DNA of 64,000 nucleotides from Oculina patagonica (taxonomy: Eukaryota). Location of the stretch: assembly GCF_052425735.1 (NCBI RefSeq), contig NC_135770.1, positions 29,264,001-29,328,000 on the forward strand. The letters run 5' to 3'. Shown here piece after piece: positions 5,563 to 23,500 of the stretch. The notes below the pieces were generated by a model. It was given only the letters and a program-made list of their open reading frames with translations, did not search any database and was not told the origin of the DNA. A program made the translations under genes and the position numbers. The number at the start of each line of letters is the position of its first letter. Position 1 is the stretch's first letter.

Positions 5563-8500
5563 TCAATTCTTCATTATCTTTCTGGTCCAAGCTTCTGGTC
5601 CATGGATGTCTTTAATCAACATCATTTCGTCAACAACTTGTCCTCCCTTGGAAAAAAAAGGCAAAATCAGTTTATTTTTCGCCATGAGGATTGAATCTTA
5701 ATCTGTTTCCTTAAAAAGGAGACTAATCATATTGCCATACGATTTGCGCGTTTTTCAAAAATTTGGATGGTCAAATTTAAAACCTTTTTAAGACAGCAAA
5801 CAAACTGAAAATAAAAACGTTACTCTGGTTTAAAAATGTTGAAAACGTTCGTAAGAATTTCGTAAAAGTCCCAACGTTTCGGCTAAAACTTCAGCCTTCC
5901 TGAAAGGGGAAAGTGAGCTCGGAGCTCCGATTTGCATAGTACAAGAACATATTTTTTACAAATTCCTTGTTACTCCCCCCCTGATGAAGGCTGAAGTTTT
6001 AGCCGAAACGTTGGGACCTTTACGAAATTTTTACGAACATTTTCAACATTTTTAAACAAGAGCAACGTTTGTATTTTCAATCATGAATCAACCACCTGGT
6101 TACAGGACTATTTTTAAAAGCAAACAAACTTTCAGGGCTGTTTCATTCGTTAGACTTACCAGATCAACACTAACTTGCTCCATGTAAATATGCGTCTTGT
6201 TGTGGATGGTCATTCGTGTGTATCCATAATCTACTGTGCGATAAGCTGTCCAAGGAGGGGAGTCTTTCTTAAATGGGTCATGCTTTGAATAACATCCCTT
6301 AAAACAAACAAAAAAAACAAGCATCACTCACACTAGCAGAAATAGTTTGATGCCTTAAACTTCTAAAATATTCTAGGAAAAACTCTTAAAATGAACATTA
6401 TTGACTCGTGCAGTCTGTCAAGAAATGATCGCCCGCGTTTGTTTCGATGGAGCAGATACTCAGCAATCAAACAGGCGGCGCAAGCACAATCTTGCCAGAA
6501 TTGTTGCCCGGAAATAACAAGAAATGTTTCAAATCTTCAGAATTAGATTGCTTAACTTTTGAGAAATTAGTGAGTCGCACAGTCGTCCGAGGCGATTAAA
6601 ACGTGGTTTAGGCAACAATTTTTCAGTATTTTTACTCATAACCTCTAACTTTATTATCTCGTATTCTGGATTGCCCCTGTATTTTATGTAACGTTTTCTT
6701 ACAGATTTCTTTCACATTATGCTTCAAAATGTTACAAAATCCAAGTTAATGATAACCGAAGGTGGGGGTGAATTCTGCGTTTGACTGCTGTGTGAAAATA
6801 TAAATGTTGATAACATACCGCTGACCCAGTAATGATATGAACTGGGGCGCAAGGGTTGGTGTATGGCTCTTCCCAAGATCCATTGCAAACCTGCAACAAA
6901 CGAAATGAATGACGTGAATTTTATAATGAATGTCATTAAACCGTGAACTTACAGGATGGGCTAATTTTAATATCTTACCTCCAAGTTGTACACGGGCCAC
7001 AGTCGTTCATAAGAGTGTTCATGAGCCTCCAACATCAGATCCACACCTTAAAAGATAAATAAATATTATGTCATCACTTGTACATACACATATATACACG
7101 TATATAGTGTATCCCTGAGGCACATAATTAATTATGTATATTAGTGAACTGGACTCACTACGCTCAGGTATGTGCACTTGCTCATCCCAGACGAGGAACA
7201 CACCAGCCAGCAGTGGACAGCGCGTCCTCTTGGGACCGCAGCACTGCGTGAGGGGTGGGGGAGAAAAGTTCTTATTTCTCCCACCTCAGTGATCCAACAC
7301 TGTGGTACACAGGGGACGGAGACGAGCGCACCAGTAGCTTAGATACCGTTGAGTTGTAGATTTTTCCAACGTGCGGCGAGAAGGGGGTGAGACGGGTTGA
7401 GTTCAAAGCATTGCGTGACAATCCTTACAGGATTGCATATAATCTTTAAGTTACAGGAAGTAATATGGGGGTCGCCCCCAAGGCATATTATAGGAGCCCC
7501 CTAGGGAATTCTTAAGTGGCCTTCACACGACAAACTTAAGTTGGCAAACTCATGTTTGCAAACTCAAGTTTGTGTGTGTGAACAACACAACAACAGTTGG
7601 CAAACAAGTTGGCAAACTGTTGGTGAGAATAAAGACAAGTTCTATTTTGTTGCCAACAGTTGGCCAACTTGTTTGCCGTTGTTGTGTCGTTCACACACAC
7701 ACCAACTTGAGTTTGCCAACACGAGATGGCCAGTAGTTTGTCGTGTGAGGGCCGCTTTGTAGAGACTACATTATATGGGAGTCCCCATGGGTATTTATTA
7801 AGGTACAGTGGAGCACCCAAGGCATATTATTTTTTTTTTGAAGTGATGACTATAATGTCGGCATGCGAGTTGGATGTCCGGATTACAACCTCGTTCCCAG
7901 GGTCCTCTCCTTCCATTCACTGGATCTTTTCAAACTTTACAGTTTTGTGAAGAACTGGTTTATTGGCAGTAGTATCAGTAGTACCCTTACCAAAGAAAAA
8001 ATATGGGAATGATATGGCAAAGGCTGGGCCATATCTGACCCATATGTGGAAATGATATGGGAAGGTAAGAGGGTGGTATGGATATGATATGGGCGCTATT
8101 TTTGCCAAATTTCAAGCTATGGTAAATGTATGGGAAAAAAAGTCTATGCTTTCCATAATATGGTGGAGCTATGGGAGTAATATACCCATATGAATTCCAT
8201 AGATATGAGAAATTTGCTTCCTCTACTTCATCTATGGAAATGATATGGGATGTTCACATTGTAATGCTCCATAGGTTACCCATAGGTTTTCCATTTGAAA
8301 ATGATATGGGATTTCTATGGGGCTTATAAGTCTTTGTGATATTTTATGAAGTTATAATTCTTATTACCCATGCACTTGCTATGGGAATTCTATGGGGTGA
8401 AAATATTCTTGTGATTAGAAATACCTGTAATCAGAAGTTCAGAAAAAAACATTTAAAACAGCATCTCATTATACCAGGTAATTATTTCACTTTGCTTACA

Positions 8501-11500
8501 TGCAAAATATGAGTTTCTCTGGGGATGGACTTGAGGAAATCTGAAACAAGAATTTTAAGGGGACACACCATGAACACTTAATGGTTGTCCTGAAAATATC
8601 TTAATTCTGTAACTGCAATTTCTGTGAATACAGGGCTTATTTATGATGACCACTAATCTGAACACACATCAATGATAGGTGAATATTGTTATTTTATTTG
8701 GGATAACAAAAACAAGAAAGGTGTGAGGTTCAAACATTTTACACCACTATATATATAGCTAGGAGGCTATAAGAAAGTAAATATTCCACAGATCCCAACA
8801 ATTTAATTATTTTGTTTTAGTTATGTAATATTAAAAATTACTTAACCAGCACAAAGTTGTCAAAGTCTCAAAGGACCAGACTCAATAAAATAACTTTACT
8901 GATCCAAATAAACTTTGTCTGTTCAATCAATCCTTTTCAAAATGATTTGGGAAATGTGCTGCATATCCGATGCCACTATCTGAAAACTTCATGTAAATAC
9001 AAACGTCAATGATGTCCTCAAGCAGAACTATATCAAATCTGTTCCTGTTTGGATGTTGGAGGGAAACAATGTGATGAATTGGGCTACCCAGTACTTCATG
9101 TGATGCACAGATATGTTGGTCAGACTTTGACATGGGAACAATGACAGCACCACAGGTCTTTGCTGGATCTTGTGGAACCACAAAGAATTCTTCAATTTGC
9201 CCATAGCTTGTGTTTCCTTCTTTCTGGTAGGCAACAGTGAAGCTGTTTCTTCGCGAAACTCTCTTGTACATTCTGGAATGGAACACTGCATCTCCATATT
9301 GCACTCGCTTAAAAAATGTGACATCAGAAATGGATTCTACTCTAAGGAACAACAGAAGGTCATCCTCAAATGGCATATCAGGTTTGCCTTTCCTTAAGGC
9401 ACCAATGGCATAGAACTCGTCTTTGAGATGTGTTCTGTTGGTTCTGAAAAAGCAGAAACAATAATAGTAGTATGATTATATTTGTTAGCAATGGATTTCT
9501 TAATGAAGATGTGTATATATATACAAAAATGTTGTTTAGTTGAGCCAGGTTGAGTACCTGTACATGTGTTTTTGACGAAACCTTGACGCATGAAAAAAGG
9601 GAAACCATAAATTAAAATGCCACCCTTATACATGTACTTACTGGGAAATAGGAAAAAAGCAGTTGTCATCTGCGACAGAATTATCAATATATTAAGTCGG
9701 GTTGCCTAAATCACGCTCTTAAAGCTCTCAAAAGAAATATTAGTGAGCTTACCAATGCTGTGTACCCAGAACACTATTTGGTTTTGTCATTTATTGTTCT
9801 TGCTTTTCACAGGGTAAACATTTTGATGTAAACAACAAGTGCAGTAACGTTGACAGCCTCTTACATATTTGTGGTACAATTATTAACTATAACGTTGAAT
9901 AAGAAGGATTGCTTCTTTTGGAACTTCACAGGATGTTTCAAAAAAAGACTTGCAAACCTGTCAGAATGCCCACATAGTCGCAACACCATATCCTTAGCAT
10001 TTCCTGGAGGCATGTCATCTATCAGGTCAGGGAGGCACTGATGGCTTGTGACAGCTGTCATTATCTTCAAGTAAACAAAAACATAAAATTCAGTTACATT
10101 TTTGCTTAAAGTTTCCTTACTATTTCAAATCTTACTTTCATAACATCTTCACTCAATTACTTATTTTATTTTTCCACTTTCACTAGGCAACACGTACATA
10201 AGCAATGATTTTTGTGTTGACTCTGCAACATCCACATACCTGATTTGCAATGTTTTGTGTTCCATGGAAATAATTTCCAATGTCCCCATTCCAGTCTTCA
10301 AACACAAAAAGTGAACTGGACCAGAGGGGCCCATGATCAATTACATTTTCCTTCAAATGAAGTAGCATATGGTGGTTCATAAGCACATACCTTGCACCTG
10401 TGGAGTAAGAATGGATATTTATTTTTGCCTATTTTTAAATTTTGCTTACAGACTATATAGCAGAAAAATGAATCACAGTATATATAGCTGAATGTATGTA
10501 ATACAGTTACCAACTGCATTTAAATTAAAGCTATGATTTTGGGTTCATGCTGATCAAGCTCATGTTGACTGGGTGCCTAGGAATCAGCCTGGGAAATGTT
10601 CTTAAGCTAGTCCCTTTTCTCACTAGTTTGATACCTATAAAAACACTTGGTTGGCTTTTATCTGTCCTAGATCAATGTTCAAGGTCTAGTTCTACAGGTA
10701 ATAGAAAGTTACTAACCATAGTATGCATCAAACATTTCAACGAAGTGCATCAAAAACTTCCCAGCCATCTCTAGTTGCTGAGGTGAAATGGATCTGCCTG
10801 ACAGTAGAATGATTCCACCAACCAGCAAAGTATAGTGCTGAAAATACTCCTCGTTAAGAATACCTTTCATACATGGAAGTGAATAGTAAAAAAGCCAATT
10901 GCGGTATTCTGTTGCTGCAATTAGAAAAAAATAAAAAATAAATAAAATACACACTGTATATTGTATTCAACATTTTTGTCACTGCCATACCTGTTGGTAT
11001 AAGCAGTAAAGTAACATATAATTGTATACAAAAATATACAATCAGATGTATGAGCTCAAAGATAAGAACTTTTATGATCGATTCTTGCATTGTGTAACAT
11101 AATTTTATTAAGAATAAGTTTTAACAAGCATGGATATAACACCTGCATCCATCATTGGATGTTATGCTCATTCATTTTTACCTAATATGTAGCAACTGAC
11201 AGTGGATTATGTTTCATTCAAAAAATACCATATGCATTTTAAAGTACTGTGTGGTTTGTCAAAACTTCTGTTACTTTAAAGCACAAAAATATTTTTCTTT
11301 TTACCTTTCCAAAACTTCAGTTGATGTTGTATGCTCCTTGGGATTCTAGTTATTACACCAGGGGGCTTGATCTCTAGCAGGCGTTCATCTACTCTTTCAA
11401 CACTGTTTCCACAGTACCATCTCTGCCCACTATGCTTGGAATTAAACCATAGACAAACCAGCTGCTTCACTACTCCTAGAAACACGCAGTGCATTGCATC

Positions 11501-14500
11501 TATGCCAATACCCTTTACGATGTCGAAGCTTGGCAGTTTTAATAAAGGGCTGGGTGCCTTGAAGCCACAAATCTAAAAAAAAAAAAACAACCTCAAGTTG
11601 GGATATCTTTAATGAGGGGCTAACAAAAAAAGCCTTTTTGAGAAAAAGGGGCTTTTGACAGTCTTCAAAAATAATAAAAAAGGAATGGCATTTAATTACA
11701 CCATAACAAAAGTGATTTTATTAACATTCTGAGTTTTAAAACCTAACCCATTTTTTAGTACAAGCAATAATAAACTGTAAGCCAGATTTACTGTTGCATC
11801 AATTCAACTGATCACCAATAGATGGGTGTGGGTATGATGCCTGAGTCTATGAAGGAGCTGCCAGTAAGCTCGGATGGTAACTATGACAACCCTAAGAGCA
11901 GCAACCACCAGGCACCAACACACTGGCAAGGCAATGTGAGTAAAATGGCTAGACCTCCACAGGAGGTGTAAATTAACTGAAGCCCTGATGAAAAACCCTG
12001 ATACCACCCAAGATTAGGTAAGCAAATAGTTTAACTTGCCTAAATTTCAATTAGCCTTATTAGTCTTTTACTAAATAATAAGAGTAACCTACTGTCGAAT
12101 TTCTCTCAAGAGCTTCACAGGACTGAATCTTTACTTCTGCTGCAGTTCTTGATTTTGCATGACCTGAGGCAGTGTTGCGGAAGGGAAATGTCATCACATG
12201 ACCTCTTGCACTGGTCTTTATAATCTCACCAGGCTCGTTGCAATAGGAACAGCTATCATGACCGTTGTATGTGACTTGCTCTACAACACCAGCACGGGCA
12301 GGGAGATCAAAATGGCCAGAGAGTGCCAAGATTTTTGATGTTGCCTTCACTCCATCTGGAAGTTCAACCTCAATTCCTGTTATTTCAAGACGAATAATTA
12401 TGGGAAAAAATCAAAAAGGAATTAACTACATGATCAATTCAGGTTAACTGAAACTGTCTGCAATAATTGTTATTGCCCAAGACATGATCATCTTACAGCT
12501 TACCAGGTGAAGGGTAATCTCCCTCCCCCTAGAGTTATTTGATATTAAATTGGTGAGTTATATTTGATATTACATTGGTTTCCGTTAGATAATTTAAAGA
12601 ATGCATTCATCTTGTTGAAATAGTGGCACCAATCATATCATAAGTCAAATTCAATTTCTTGCCTTCTCTTAAATTCAAAGGCAGCTGTGATCAGAAAACA
12701 AATACTTCTGATTGTAACACTGATCAGTGCTTCTATTTTTGATAAGACCATTGCATTCTTAGAACCGATTCAAATTTTGAATAATCAATATTCATTTAAT
12801 AAGTACTTCAAGGGGGTACATGTATGTTTTGCTTGACACGACCGTGAGGCAAAAAAACAAATGAAAGTGTTTTAATTAATTTTCAATCAATTCAACTGCA
12901 TTACAACTTACCATGAATTTCTGTTTCTTGCAATGCATCAACAAATGGCTTGAAGAAAGTGGAAAAGAAAGGTTTTTCTTCCCCAAACCACAGGCCTCCA
13001 AATAATCGGAACTTACTTTTCCTCCTGCATGAAAACACAAGAAAACATTTTATGTAATTGATTCTTATATCTGCATCCAAATGTGGACATACACTGTATT
13101 TCTTTGAAGTTGTTTTCCTTTCAAAGGATTAATTAAAAGTATTTTCATCCTTGTTGGTCTGTTTACATTCATCTTTCATTGCATGTTATGGTAACTGTAA
13201 TTTGTTATACCGGGATGCATTATGCATTTGGGCTACTGATTGCATTCGTTATAACAAGGATTTCGTTGTTTTATAATGGTTTTGTTCAATTCATTTTACT
13301 GTATTTTGGCCGAGCTGAAGAATATTGTTTGTAAAACCAAGGACTTTGTTATGAAAAGGTTCCTTACAGTGTAAATGGAGGTTCCACTGTAACTATTCTA
13401 CTGTAAGTAAGTAATCAAAACTACAACGATTTTATGAATGTTAACTCTGACTTATTTACCTTAATGATGGGGGAAGCTCATTGACAAGGAGAAAGAGAGG
13501 CCAAACTCCAAACTGTGAAGATCGAAATATAGCAACGCCATCTGTATTCAGCTTTACAGAGAGGTTATATGGCTCTGACAGGACTCCACCTGGTCCACAT
13601 TTGCTTTGATAAAGAGAGCCATCATAGACATCTTCAATGTTTTCGGCAGCCCTTTTCACTCGTTGAAAACGGTACTGCAGGCCATTAACAAATTCTGGGT
13701 CTGAGGAATAAAAAATAAGCATTGCTTAGGCAAGAGAGGTGCAAAATAACGATGTAAATTGCTGCTGCAATGATATAAAATCAAAGGTTCTTCTAGCAAC
13801 CTCATGTTATTTTGACGAAGTGCCGTCCTTTTCAATTTTTTCCAAATAAACATTCAATAATGTAACAATCTCATTTCATTTTATTATTTGTTTTCCATTC
13901 GAGTTTGGGGTAAATTCACACCTTAGTTCTACCCCCAAATTTATGTGCAAGAGATAATGGGACAACTTAAGGGGAAAAGCAACAGCAGTAAGGGGATGGG
14001 AAAACATGTTTAATTTACATTTAATGCATAAATTTATTAGGATGGAGTATGGGAGAGTGAAATTTATGTCCATTCGTCTCCCACATAGCATATCATGAGA
14101 TAAAAATGAAAAATACCAGAAATAAAACCCTTGTAAAGGCCCATATGCATTTTTCTGCTAACAGCAACAACAAATTCCAGCTAAAAACCCTTCCTGCCCA
14201 CACCAAGGTCCCCACCCCACACCCAGATCACATCGTTTAAATTCATCCAATCAATACACTTACCATTGAAAAACTTTTTAAGTTGTTTTACGATTGGAAC
14301 TTCAATGAAGAATCTGCCAGCTTCCAGGATGCTTTTACCACAAATGCTGCAGGCTCTGTTTACCCGGTCAGAACGATCCTCAACTTTGCCATAATACGCA
14401 TTGCAGTAACCACAGAAGTAATGCTTGACAATGTCTCCCTTGGCTTGGCCCACAAATTCGAATAACTTTTTTACTGTTGTTCTACAGTTATTGGGTCGAG

Positions 14501-20500: not shown

Positions 20501-23500
20501 ACAACTGAGAAAAAACAGTGACCAGGTATGGGTTTGATATGGAGGCCAATGTCCCATATCAAACCCATATAAATACCATATATGGACCATAGACTATCCC
20601 ATATCATTCCCATACTTGGGCCATATATGTCCCATATCACCAGCTTTGGTAAGGGTATATGCAGTGTGATTGATATATTGGGTGCAGCACTGACCCCAAG
20701 TGCTCATTAATTTCTGGTATTTGTGAAGGAGAATACTTCTTTGCAACTTGTATTATCGGCAAACTGTGTTTGCTTTCTTTCTGTTAAAACGGAGATTTTG
20801 GGTGTGGAGAGAGTATTGGAAAATAAGATATTGGATTCGATTAGAAAAAATATGCATAACCATAACATCCGAAAACACAAACGATCACAGTGGGCTTATT
20901 TGAAGATGATCTAATGTGCAATTTCTGAACATAAGTGAGCAGAGTTCGAAATCAATGAAGCAGAGAGCTCTTCATTCAAAACAGTGTAAACAAGACGGCA
21001 TTTGACCTTAGTGCTACTAGCTCATACCCACGCCGGCTATTAAATGTCGTTTATGAAATGTGACTCTTACATGTAAATGTAACACAAATTTTGTTAAAGC
21101 ATGAGCAACAACAACAGGCTATCTAAAAATAAATGTAAGTTTCCTGTAAGATCAAATTAAAATTCCTAAAATTCTAGCGAGTCAGTCAAATCAGTGTGCT
21201 TCACAAGTTGTCAGCTACTTTTAAAACATATTTAAGAGGCGCTTGTTAAACGTCATCACTTCTGCATGCATTGCGTGCCATTTATTTCTATAGGGGGACG
21301 GCTCTACATGAGGATTGGGTTCCTCCCTGCCGACACCCTTTTGAAATACTTTTTTTTCTCTTCTTAAATTGCAATAAAGTTGCTATAAATAAATTATAAA
21401 TATAATTAAATATATCAAGGTATAATAAGTAATACAGGAGCCCCCTGGGCATTCTTATAGACAGTAAGTTATATGAGAGTCCGCAGGGGTATTTATCAAG
21501 GTACAGTAAGTTATTGCATCACCAGTCTTCTTACCGTATTTGTAAAACAAGTCTTCCAAAGCCCACAGATGTTTTGAAGTGATTCCAGTGCGTATCTACA
21601 AACATAGGAACAAAAACATTGCTAAATTGGTCAAATGCTCCATGGAATAATGTAAAATGCAAGTTATCACAGTGTTATAAGTAGCATTTTTACAGTACTC
21701 ATACCATACTGTGAATTTTGGTGCAGTCATCACCATCATCATTACTACAGTACATCGGTTTGTGAGCCATTGTGATAATCCATGGACGCAACTTGCGGTT
21801 TTCAGGTGATGCTGCTTCCTATAAGGTTAATTTATAAAATGAAGTAGCCTTTAAACAAAAAACAACATATAAATCCTGCCCCATTGTTGACTATATTGCT
21901 ATTTGGGATTATAATCAAAGCCCTTCGAGCAACCTTATGGTAATTTGATGAAGTACCGTCCTTTGCTTTTTTTTCCAAAATAAGCGTTCAATAGTGTAAC
22001 AGTCTCACTACATTTGCCTTTGAATGATTTTTTTGTTGTTGTTGTTTATGGGAGTTGCGTCAATGGGTCACTGATGCTTTGCACTCTCTGGCTTCGTAGC
22101 ACAAATTCTATTTTTTTTTAATAAAAAAAAAAAATAAATAAAAAAAAAATTCTATTTTCACCACCTGGAAATAACACGAGTTCAAAATGGCAAGACGTCT
22201 CGTGCCACATCCGTTTTTCATCTTTTTGAGGCGAGCAGAAACACGACGTGCTCAGGCACATCTTTCTCTCAAATTTCAGTGACCCATTGATGCAACTCCC
22301 ATGAACAAAAAAAAACATTCAAGAGCAAATGAAGTGAGACCGTTACATTATTGAACACTTATTTGGAAAAAAAAAGCGAAGGACGGCACATCATCGAATT
22401 ACCATGAGGTTGCTCGAAGGGCCTTTGATTAGCATATTTAGGTAAATTTGTGAATTTGTTTACTTTTCTGTTCGCACGTATAGCGTTATTTTGAGCAGCG
22501 AATAAAATTTAAGAGAAAGATGTGCGTTTCAGCACGACTCAAAAAGATGAAAACGGATGACGTGATATGAAGGTAATGTGATGCGAAACAAAATCGTGCA
22601 GCATGAATGTTGTGTTTACTAAAACGCGTCACATGGCAAGTGTAACTGTATGTAGCTTATAGCTGCTATCAATAATGTCACAATCTCACTTCATTTGCCT
22701 TTGAATGTTTTCTTACATGAATGGGTCATTGATAGCGTATGCTCTGAGGCTTCGTAGAGCGAATTCCATTCTCTTTTATCACCAGAGGATAAGTGTAAGT
22801 GATCCTCTTTCAATTTGTTTTGTGAAAATTCAACCTTGTTCCCTGAAAGAGAGAGACCCTGGGAACAAGGTTGTAGAATAATTTGTTTTTGATTGACATG
22901 TGCTGAATGGCGTTTTAAAGAACCTTTCTGTCAGCACGTTCACCATTAAAATGAATTAATTACGGTTTAATATCAGAATGGAGTAAGTGAGTGATCGAGT
23001 GAGGGAAACACGTGACTTTGCGAATGATCACTACAACCTCATTACCATGAGGTAAAAATAAAGAGATCTGTATTAATTTCGGAGAAATTACATAACTGTA
23101 GAGAAATGGCTAACCTGCAGGTCTTTTACCAGCCAATCATATTGCTGAACAATCTGCTCAATTCCAAACTGTAGCCAGAAGTAGACTTCTGTTGAATAGC
23201 TGATGATGTGTGCAGGTCCAATGTTCCAACTTAATCAAGCATTAAGAAAAAGGGAGAGACAGAAAATGCGAGGCATGTAAAATATAAATTCTGAAAAAAA
23301 TGAACAGCAGGCTCAGTGGAGATTGGGATTGGAGCAAGCCGAGTGTAGTCTGTCTAGGAAAATCTCACAGGAGAAAACAGGCAAGAGCGTGCACCTCATG
23401 CTGATATTTTCCTGCTGGCTCCACTCACCAGCATTTTTGCCCCTCAGTATATCACCCTAGAAAGTCTGAACATTCACAAGTTATGTTTGTCTGGTTTCAG

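Follow-up and report, generated by a model that had tools for sequence, protein, structure and literature searches.

A two-gene CMC transposon of the coral Oculina patagonica carries a BEN-domain gene divergent from its transposase gene

The DNA analysed here is a stretch of 64,000 nucleotides from Oculina patagonica (G000:C13:29264001-29328000). It is referred to below as the window, and element coordinates are given in window numbering. At positions 7984-20655 it contains a DNA transposon of 12.7 kb that is full-length in appearance. The element carries a transposase gene on the minus strand and, diverging from it on the plus strand, a partner gene whose product ends in a BEN domain. An earlier, sequence-only reading had described perfect terminal inverted repeats (TIRs) with a target site duplication (TSD), two spliceable, stop-free genes for products of 915 and 503 amino acids (aa), and a 280-bp spacer between them, and all of these features were reproduced.

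The TIRs are perfect over 12 bp. The left TIR (CCCTTACCAAAG, 7984..7995, plus strand) has its exact reverse complement at the right end (20644..20655, minus strand, CTTTGGTAAGGG on the plus strand), and each is flanked by a TA that was read directly from the sequence as a TSD copy (7982..7983 on the left, 20656..20657 on the right). Both ends are supported by two full-length copies, L024 (ERZ25067879) and L025 (ERZ25073780), which are contigs of other public assemblies; DNA homology to these runs from exactly 7984 to exactly 20655. The right end at 20655 has further support from other fragments in the same genome, which stop at the equivalent base and continue into differing flanks.

Inside the TIRs lie two regions dense in short repeats. 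The left subterminal region (7996..8400) contains 22 TATGG/CCATA cores, mainly in pairs 11 bp apart, and the right region (20100..20643) contains 30, again with 11-bp spacing dominant. The core therefore occurs 52 times in 973 subterminal bases (approximately 53 per kb), compared with 1.6 per kb across the remaining window, and the consensus of the motif is (A/C)TATGG(G/A)A. Measured from one core to the next on the same strand, the commonest distance is exactly 11 bp (25 intervals), so most of these sites pair one helical turn apart. The 11-bp pairing was found in all three full-length copies.

The transposase gene (gene 1, minus strand) consists of nine exons, with every intron GT-AG, and encodes a stop-free product of 915 aa. 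Exon 1 (14264..15125) holds the start codon and the invariant cysteines C238, C241 and C262, and a contig of run X1, a public run guessed to be RNA, spans 14770-15117 within it. Exon 2 (13460..13700) carries the first catalytic residue, D341, and is the exon in which a Pfam Transposase_21 match was seen. Using the alignment of relatives, the second catalytic residue D429 and the pair C448-x-x-C451 were placed in exon 4 (12093..12376), an invariant D525-x-M-H528 motif in exon 5 (11305..11572), and H665 and H669, forming an H(3)H motif, together with the catalytic E689 in exon 7 (10240..10397). Exons 3 (12912..13024) and 6 (10717..10914) come from the spliced model and the comparison of copies, and exon 9 (8927..9443), with the stop codon, from the spliced model. 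For exon 8 (9958..10064) the donor at 9958 was favoured. An alternative, stronger-looking donor at 9865 would add 31 aa and give a 946-aa product; this model was dropped because none of the homologues contains the additional 31 residues and because DNA conservation ends at approximately 9956.

An exhaustive HMMER search with exon 4 returned 206 relatives. The long ones align to residues ~135-946 of the 946-aa model at 30-36% identity, with E-values of 1e-84 to 1e-159, and in an alignment with 10 full-length relatives D341, D429, C448, C451, D525/M527/H528, H665, H669 and E689 are all invariant. The contigs of two relatives, P0141 and P0148, are short transcripts without neighbouring genes. The element bears out the description of an intact-looking two-gene DNA transposon.

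Judged from its sequence, the enzyme is a CMC transposase of the EnSpm/Mirage side with all conserved catalytic residues present. Pfam matches on single exons were weak, Transposase_21 (PF02992) reaching E=0.0048 for exon 2 alone, which is below the cut-off. Full-length relatives exceed the Pfam cut-offs, either for Transposase_21 (44-47 bits, cut-off 28.6) or for DUF1258 (PF06869, 37-43 bits), and in an atlas feature search with exon 2 the Transposase_21 set made up 79 of the 100 nearest clusters. DUF1258 has been equated with Mirage transposases and Transposase_21 with CACTA transposases (PMC3985635). The invariant residues of the enzyme also agree with the CMC signature as quoted in PMC12730594. 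The same source gives target duplications of 2-5 bp for CMC elements and termini of 5'-CA..TG-3' 'in most cases' (PMC12730594). In agreement with the first of these, 2-bp matches (TA, CG, TA, TA and GA) flank five elements. Termini of the form CCC..GGG are common to the window element, L024, L025, and the C1 family and sister element described below.

The label 'CACTA-type' that had been given to the element stands at the level of the CMC superfamily but not in the strict sense. The subterminal arrays do agree with CACTA elements, whereas the CCCTT ends, the 2-bp duplication and the two divergent genes do not. By its CCC..GGG termini, 2-bp duplication and two-gene layout, the element falls outside strict CACTA and leans towards Mirage. 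The 2-bp duplication fits Mirage, and the best Pfam match is DUF1258 for some close relatives and Transposase_21 for others.

The partner gene (gene 2, plus strand) has six exons, every intron GT-AG, and encodes 503 aa. Exon 1 (15406..15457) was placed using a Montipora protein and the comparison of copies. Exon 2 (16134..16310) encodes a small beta-rich N-terminal domain. Exon 3 (17096..17947) encodes a Lys/Glu-rich helix, a disordered Ser/Thr/Pro-rich stretch, an acidic patch and a conserved helix (ALRKRLEKVHKRLNIA). The 83-nt exon 4 (18254..18336) is followed by exon 5 (19162..19381), which holds the first two thirds of the BEN domain as located by Pfam, profile and fold, and by exon 6 (19550..19677), which holds its end and the stop codon. 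The NCBI model LOC144635551 (P0001, 421 aa) is identical to exons 3-6, and the N-terminus of the Montipora capricornis protein P0052 matches exons 1-2. Annotated relatives of the partner occur in Acropora, Montipora and Pocillopora. Genome annotations present the protein as an ordinary gene product, for example 'DNA ligase 1-like'.

Spliced contigs from run X1 show three partner junctions, namely 16310|17096 and 18336|19162 (both GT..AG) and that of exon 5 with exon 6. When the splice models were compared with these contigs, support was thus obtained on the partner side, while coverage of the transposase gene was confined to exon 1. Both genes appear to be expressed on this basis. The contigs differ from the window by 2-9%, and may for that reason come from another individual or another copy. 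The spacer between the two start codons (15126..15405) is presumed to be a bidirectional promoter. It contains CACGTG (E-box-like) hexamers at 15149, 15198 and 15211 plus a CCAAT motif, all within 70-90 bp, and gave no DNA-level alignment to L024 or L025.

The C-terminal 110 residues of the partner are a BEN domain, as determined by Pfam, profile search and predicted fold. The Pfam BEN model (PF10523, cut-off 23.2 bits) matched P0001 at 25.4 bits and P0026 at 28.7 bits, the latter match spanning positions 8-72 of the 76 in the profile. Among PDB sequences, P0001 as a single query had no match, and a family profile matched only BEN domains, led by NACC1 (E=1.3e-4) and followed by BANP. The BEN domain folded alone gave a predicted local distance difference test (pLDDT) score of 81.6. 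With this model as the Foldseek query, ranks 1-18 in the PDB were all BEN domains (NACC1, Bsg25A, BANP, Insensitive, BEND6 and BEND3); template modelling (TM) scores by query were approximately 0.56-0.70 in the top fifteen and fell to 0.43 with BEND3. In Swiss-Prot, ranks 1-27 were all BEN proteins. The Foldseek and AlphaFold comparison that had been proposed as a check on the domain therefore came out in its favour.

The layout around the BEN domain was described only partly correctly. A coiled-coil-like helical segment and a small beta-rich N-domain do precede it. The 'GSG-aromatic hairpin', listed as a further module, is a real feature but belongs to the BEN domain, since it lines up with the hairpin at the N-terminus of the BEN domain of NACC1. 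The N-domain is predicted with confidence to be a small beta-barrel plus helix (pLDDT 75-92 in a full-length AlphaFold model of P0052 with 23 rows, in which the BEN part reached pLDDT 44-54). Its likeness to Tudor domains is a lead only, because both profile and fold matches are weak: Pfam Tudor_2 scored E=0.02 and 15 bits, where the cut-off is 31.4; the JMJD2C Tudor domain, first among representative PDB structures (Z 5.6, root mean square deviation 2.5 over 57 residues), stood barely above unrelated helices; and Foldseek on Swiss-Prot favoured the GreA C-terminal domain, with a weak E of approximately 0.05.

A specific likeness to vertebrate BEND5 was not supported. Over the aligned fold the BEN domain is 21-27% identical to BEND7, NACC1/2 and BANP but 15-17% identical to BEND5, with Xenopus BEND5 at rank 3 (17%) and human BEND5 at rank 9 (15%) in the Swiss-Prot Foldseek search. 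Matching the whole model to Xenopus BEND5 gave nothing of significance (probability 0.13, TM 0.12), and a word-based protein search found no BEND5-like relative. Placement of the BEN domain at the C-terminus is common to Insensitive, Elba1/2, BEND5, BEND6 and BEND7 and is not specific to BEND5.

L024 and L025 were used to ask whether the two genes belong together. Each copy has a transposase gene and, diverging from it as in the window element, the full set of six partner exons. By tblastn, all nine transposase exons were found in L025 and eight of the nine in L024 (exon 7 not found), with agreeing boundaries and 59-91% aa identity. The left 12-mer CCCTTACCAAAG is exact in both copies, and the right ends agree over the outer CCCTTAC only. 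A right-end match at 14822 in L025 was rejected as chance, the true end being at approximately 14570. The target duplication is taken as 2 bp because it reads CG/CG in L024 and TA/TA in L025, and the flanks differ. Only the exons and the two subterminal regions could be aligned with the window, not the introns or flanks; subterminal identity to the two copies is 78% over 7984-8284 and 74-75% over 20212-20655.

For the window compared with L024 or L025, the ratio of nonsynonymous to synonymous change (dN/dS) is 0.15-0.17 for the transposase at dS of approximately 0.93, 0.17-0.21 for the partner at dS of approximately 1.25-1.44, and 0.055 for the BEN part. By these coding comparisons both genes are under purifying selection and have travelled together over approximately one synonymous change per site. 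The partner gene is present in three of three full-length copies, so the chance capture that an absence from other copies would have suggested was not borne out; the conserved linkage and the purifying selection together indicate that the partner is part of the element.

Whole-genome Pfam scans revealed a second case, a BEN match lying 5.6 kb from a Transposase_21 match at C1:31.51 Mb. The corresponding element (C1:31504482-31514215, from L035 and L036 joined, 6482-16215) is 9.7 kb long, has ends CCCCAGTAAAAATA, and is flanked by a TA duplication within a (GGATA)n microsatellite tract. Its transposase is an intronless open reading frame (ORF) of 855 aa with a Transposase_21 score of 50.4 bits, and is 33% identical to the window enzyme. 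Divergent on the opposite strand are a 344-aa ORF with a sub-threshold ubiquitin-like match and then a 249-aa ORF with a coiled coil and a BEN domain (32.5 bits). The subterminal motif of this family is GTGATCAC. One end holds 8 copies of it and the opposite end 12, a further copy lies just inside, and the spacing is 11-12 bp; no copies were found elsewhere in the 20 kb at the C1 locus. A 99% identical fragment of the family on contig C1211 matches the transposase part only. By coordinates, one of the 19 Pfam-BEN matches in the genome, that at C1:31.51 Mb, is divergent within 10 kb of a transposase match.

Two other loci in the genome bear on this theme. At window positions 27204-29213 there is a short non-autonomous element. 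Its ends are CCCTTGTAAAAATTTTACCGCGATCGCG (CCCTTGTAAAAATTTT…) and the complement, its duplication is GA/GA, and each end is lined on the inside by dense arrays of the CGCGATCGCG type. The end of this sister element resembles the CCCCAGTAAAAATA of the C1 family, and its CCC-ended, 2-bp-duplication style is that of the main element. At C4:32853256-32889089, a BEN match (C4:32.86 Mb) lies 6 kb downstream of a degenerate transposase relative on the same, plus strand that contains stop codons, and two further BEN matches occur within 30 kb; this may be a BEN-transposase neighbourhood of a different layout. Overall, CCC-ended elements with 2-bp duplications in this genome show at least three subterminal motifs, two of them with a BEN gene.

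Partial copies of the window family and nested repeats were also observed. At C2:31163574-31169988 the right end occurs in three tandem copies, 93-96% identical and each before the same flank, that comprise the two final BEN exons together with the subterminal region and inverted end. The locus is annotated as a single gene, 'hypothetical protein ACROYT_G006984' (P0075, 336 aa), in which the BEN part is repeated; in the first copy the frame runs upstream past the exon-5 acceptor into unrelated sequence, and the gene may be chimeric. An older copy of the partner-gene half, 80-86% identical (86% in the right-end part), is located at C2:31539879-31560401. It lacks window 18280-19234 and seems to be split by approximately 18 kb of inserted DNA at window position ~19825. 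Within the element itself, a short interspersed repeat lies in transposase intron 2 (13097..13391; approximately 25 genomic copies listed, 73-78% identity) and another interspersed repeat in partner intron 2 (16516..16878; more than 10 genomic copies listed, 72-82% identity), the latter with high contig depth in run X1. Both are nested in introns and outside the transposition machinery.

The evidence for the structure is unusually clean, and the element is very probably an apparently autonomous, full-length cut-and-paste CMC transposon of the EnSpm/Mirage side, with CCCTTACCAAAG ends and 2-bp duplications. From it we infer a mechanism by analogy with other two-protein transposons. The transposase would presumably cut and join at the CCC termini. 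It is plausible that the partner reads the TATGG(G/A)A repeats, its BEN domain binding the (A/C)TATGG(G/A)A sites that fill approximately 400-550 bp inside each end, in pairs one helical turn apart, and the protein probably acting as a helix-mediated dimer or oligomer. Once bound, the partner would single out the two ends, bring them into proximity and attract the transposase, a job done by TnpA in En/Spm and by the Myb-like protein in Harbinger; the N-domain may tether the complex to chromatin. The role of the partner as a sequence-specific end-recognition or architectural subunit is a tentative assignment, to which we give a little less than an even chance. As the best explanation of the locus as a whole, combining the identity of the element with end recognition by the partner, we put this reading at a probability of roughly 0.55.

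Several observations weigh against it. The copy in the window is the sole full-length one in the assembly, its left end and transposase half being single-copy, and for this reason we can only infer present-day mobility. The termini are 5'-CCC..GGG-3' and not the CA..TG usual for CMC elements. The BEN domains of the window and C1 elements have no detectable similarity beyond the fold (hhalign E=0.22), which leaves common descent of the BEN partnership in the two families unproven. No homologue of the window partner was found near three distant transposase relatives (C1:25.80 Mb, C11:6.61 Mb and C13:12.18 Mb) in 10-20 kb per locus, covering ~3-16 kb upstream. When two copies of the helix with the BEN part (P0001:245-421) were modelled as a homodimer, the score was 0.15, below the mark of 0.32, which counts neither for nor against dimerisation. 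Finally, the invariant cysteine cluster C238, C241 and C262 of the transposase lies N-terminal to the catalytic core and could itself bind DNA.

This last point leads to a different division of labour, in which the cysteine-rich N-terminal region of the transposase reads the subterminal repeats and the partner is a regulator or chromatin tether that, in the manner of transcription-repressing host BEN factors, tunes the bidirectional promoter, counters host silencing, or steers integration via its N-terminal beta-barrel. We regard this as doubtful but worth serious consideration. In many DNA transposons the transposase itself binds the subterminal repeats, and the closest solved matches of the partner are the DNA-bound BEN domains of NACC1, BANP, Bsg25A, Insensitive and BEND6, which we take to be transcription or chromatin factors. 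However, the density profile shows no TATGG-type sites in the 280-bp spacer, so autoregulation would require a different motif. The second family, moreover, changes both its BEN partner and its subterminal motif, which fits end reading better, and a pairing of sites at one helical turn would be well matched to two domains that bind on a single face of the DNA.

Another possibility is that the BEN gene is a captured host gene, carried as a passenger with no role in the element. Capture of host genes does occur in DNA transposons, including CMC elements; TET/JBP genes are described as moving between transposon lineages (PMC12730594); and genome annotations treat the partner as an ordinary gene. 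Nevertheless, the gene keeps its exon structure and orientation in three of three full-length copies that are approximately one synonymous change per site apart, and the purifying selection on it is as strong as that on the transposase. No host locus with the full gene but free of transposase and TIRs was found in this genome, the other copies being fragments that end at the right terminus, and we consider a passenger origin highly improbable. Hardly more credit is due to the idea that the two genes form a dead or domesticated locus, retained by the host and unable to move any more. It draws on the single full-length copy in the assembly, with the left end and transposase half unique, and on two intron-rich genes that seem to be expressed. 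A retained locus is harder to reconcile with perfect 12-bp ends and duplication, with catalytic residues that are all intact, and with subterminal repeats that are conserved yet of use only to a mobile element. Right-end fragments elsewhere that are 93-96% identical indicate fairly recent activity of the family, and L024 and L025 are separate insertions with their own flanks and duplications.

End recognition by the partner, if accepted, can be extended to a broader proposal. BEN proteins would be dedicated end-recognition subunits of a whole animal CMC clade (Mirage-like, CCC-ended, with 2-bp duplications), in which partner and 11-bp-phased motif coevolve (TATGGGA for the window element, GTGATCAC for the C1 family, CGCGATCGCG for the sister element), and some metazoan single-BEN chromatin factors would descend from such partners. 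A parallel for the last step exists in NAIF1, which descended from the Harbinger Myb-like protein. Host BEN factors may have arisen in this way, as the sequence-only reading had suggested, although we judge the proposal in its full breadth to be unlikely.

Few DNA transposons encode two proteins. For En/Spm and Harbinger, it is the second protein that accounts for the finding and pairing of the ends. The BEN domain, by which chromatin and boundary factors bind DNA, is for its part widespread but poorly understood. A CMC element with a second protein was already known; what appears to be new here is a CMC transposon whose second protein with a DNA-binding fold is of the BEN type. In the open full-text literature, with Repbase Reports and subscription journals outside its scope, no publication was found in which BEN domains are tied to EnSpm/CACTA elements or to the accessory genes that DNA transposons carry. 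If the BEN partner does read the phased sites, its BEN domain and their DNA sequence would form a naturally matched pair in which BEN specificity could be studied. The element would then also be a possible origin, in evolutionary terms, of host BEN factors and a candidate two-component transposon system from a coral. The pairing may also show how such elements recognise their own ends.

Among known systems, maize En/Spm, a CACTA element encoding TnpD and TnpA, is similar in several respects. The transposases belong to the same superfamily and share Transposase_21, the DDE triad and the C(2)C and H(3-4)H motifs. Both elements have short inverted ends followed by several hundred bases of bidirectional subterminal repeats, and both encode a second protein alongside the transposase. 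In En/Spm this protein, TnpA, binds the subterminal repeats and pairs the ends. The differences are also clear. The coral ends are CCC..GGG and not CACTA, and the coral duplication is 2 bp whereas plant CACTA elements duplicate 3 bp. En/Spm produces its proteins by alternative splicing of one transcription unit, while the coral element has two divergent genes with a shared 280-bp spacer. The coral partner is a BEN protein in an animal host, and no similarity to TnpA surfaced in our searches, none of which compared TnpA directly.

Mirage, the DUF1258 group first described in nematodes, comes close on the side of the enzyme, since several of the closest transposase relatives exceed the DUF1258 cut-off, whereas other close relatives score better on Transposase_21. 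Mirage elements duplicate 2 bp, as does the coral element. To our knowledge, which does not extend to Repbase, no Mirage element with a second gene has been described. PIF/Harbinger is likewise an animal two-gene DNA transposon and combines a transposase with a Myb/SANT-like DNA-binding protein; the latter binds subterminal sites and recruits the transposase, and HARBI1 and NAIF1 were domesticated together. Its transposase superfamily is unrelated to that of the coral element, its partner fold is Myb-like and not BEN, and its duplication is 3 bp (TAA/TTA) in contrast to 2 bp.

On the side of the partner, the closest systems are the metazoan BEN-solo proteins (Insensitive, Elba1/2, BEND5 and BEND6) together with NACC1/2, BANP and BEND7, whose BEN fold resembles that of the coral protein with TM scores of 0.6-0.7. 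In Insensitive, Elba1/2, BEND5, BEND6 and BEND7 the BEN domain is at or near the C-terminus, as in the coral partner, and the solved examples bind DNA specifically. Identity to these factors is 15-27%, the best matches being NACC1/2, BEND7 and BANP and not BEND5. The N-terminal beta-barrel of the coral protein has no demonstrated counterpart among them, and the coral partner, unlike these host factors, is encoded by a transposon.

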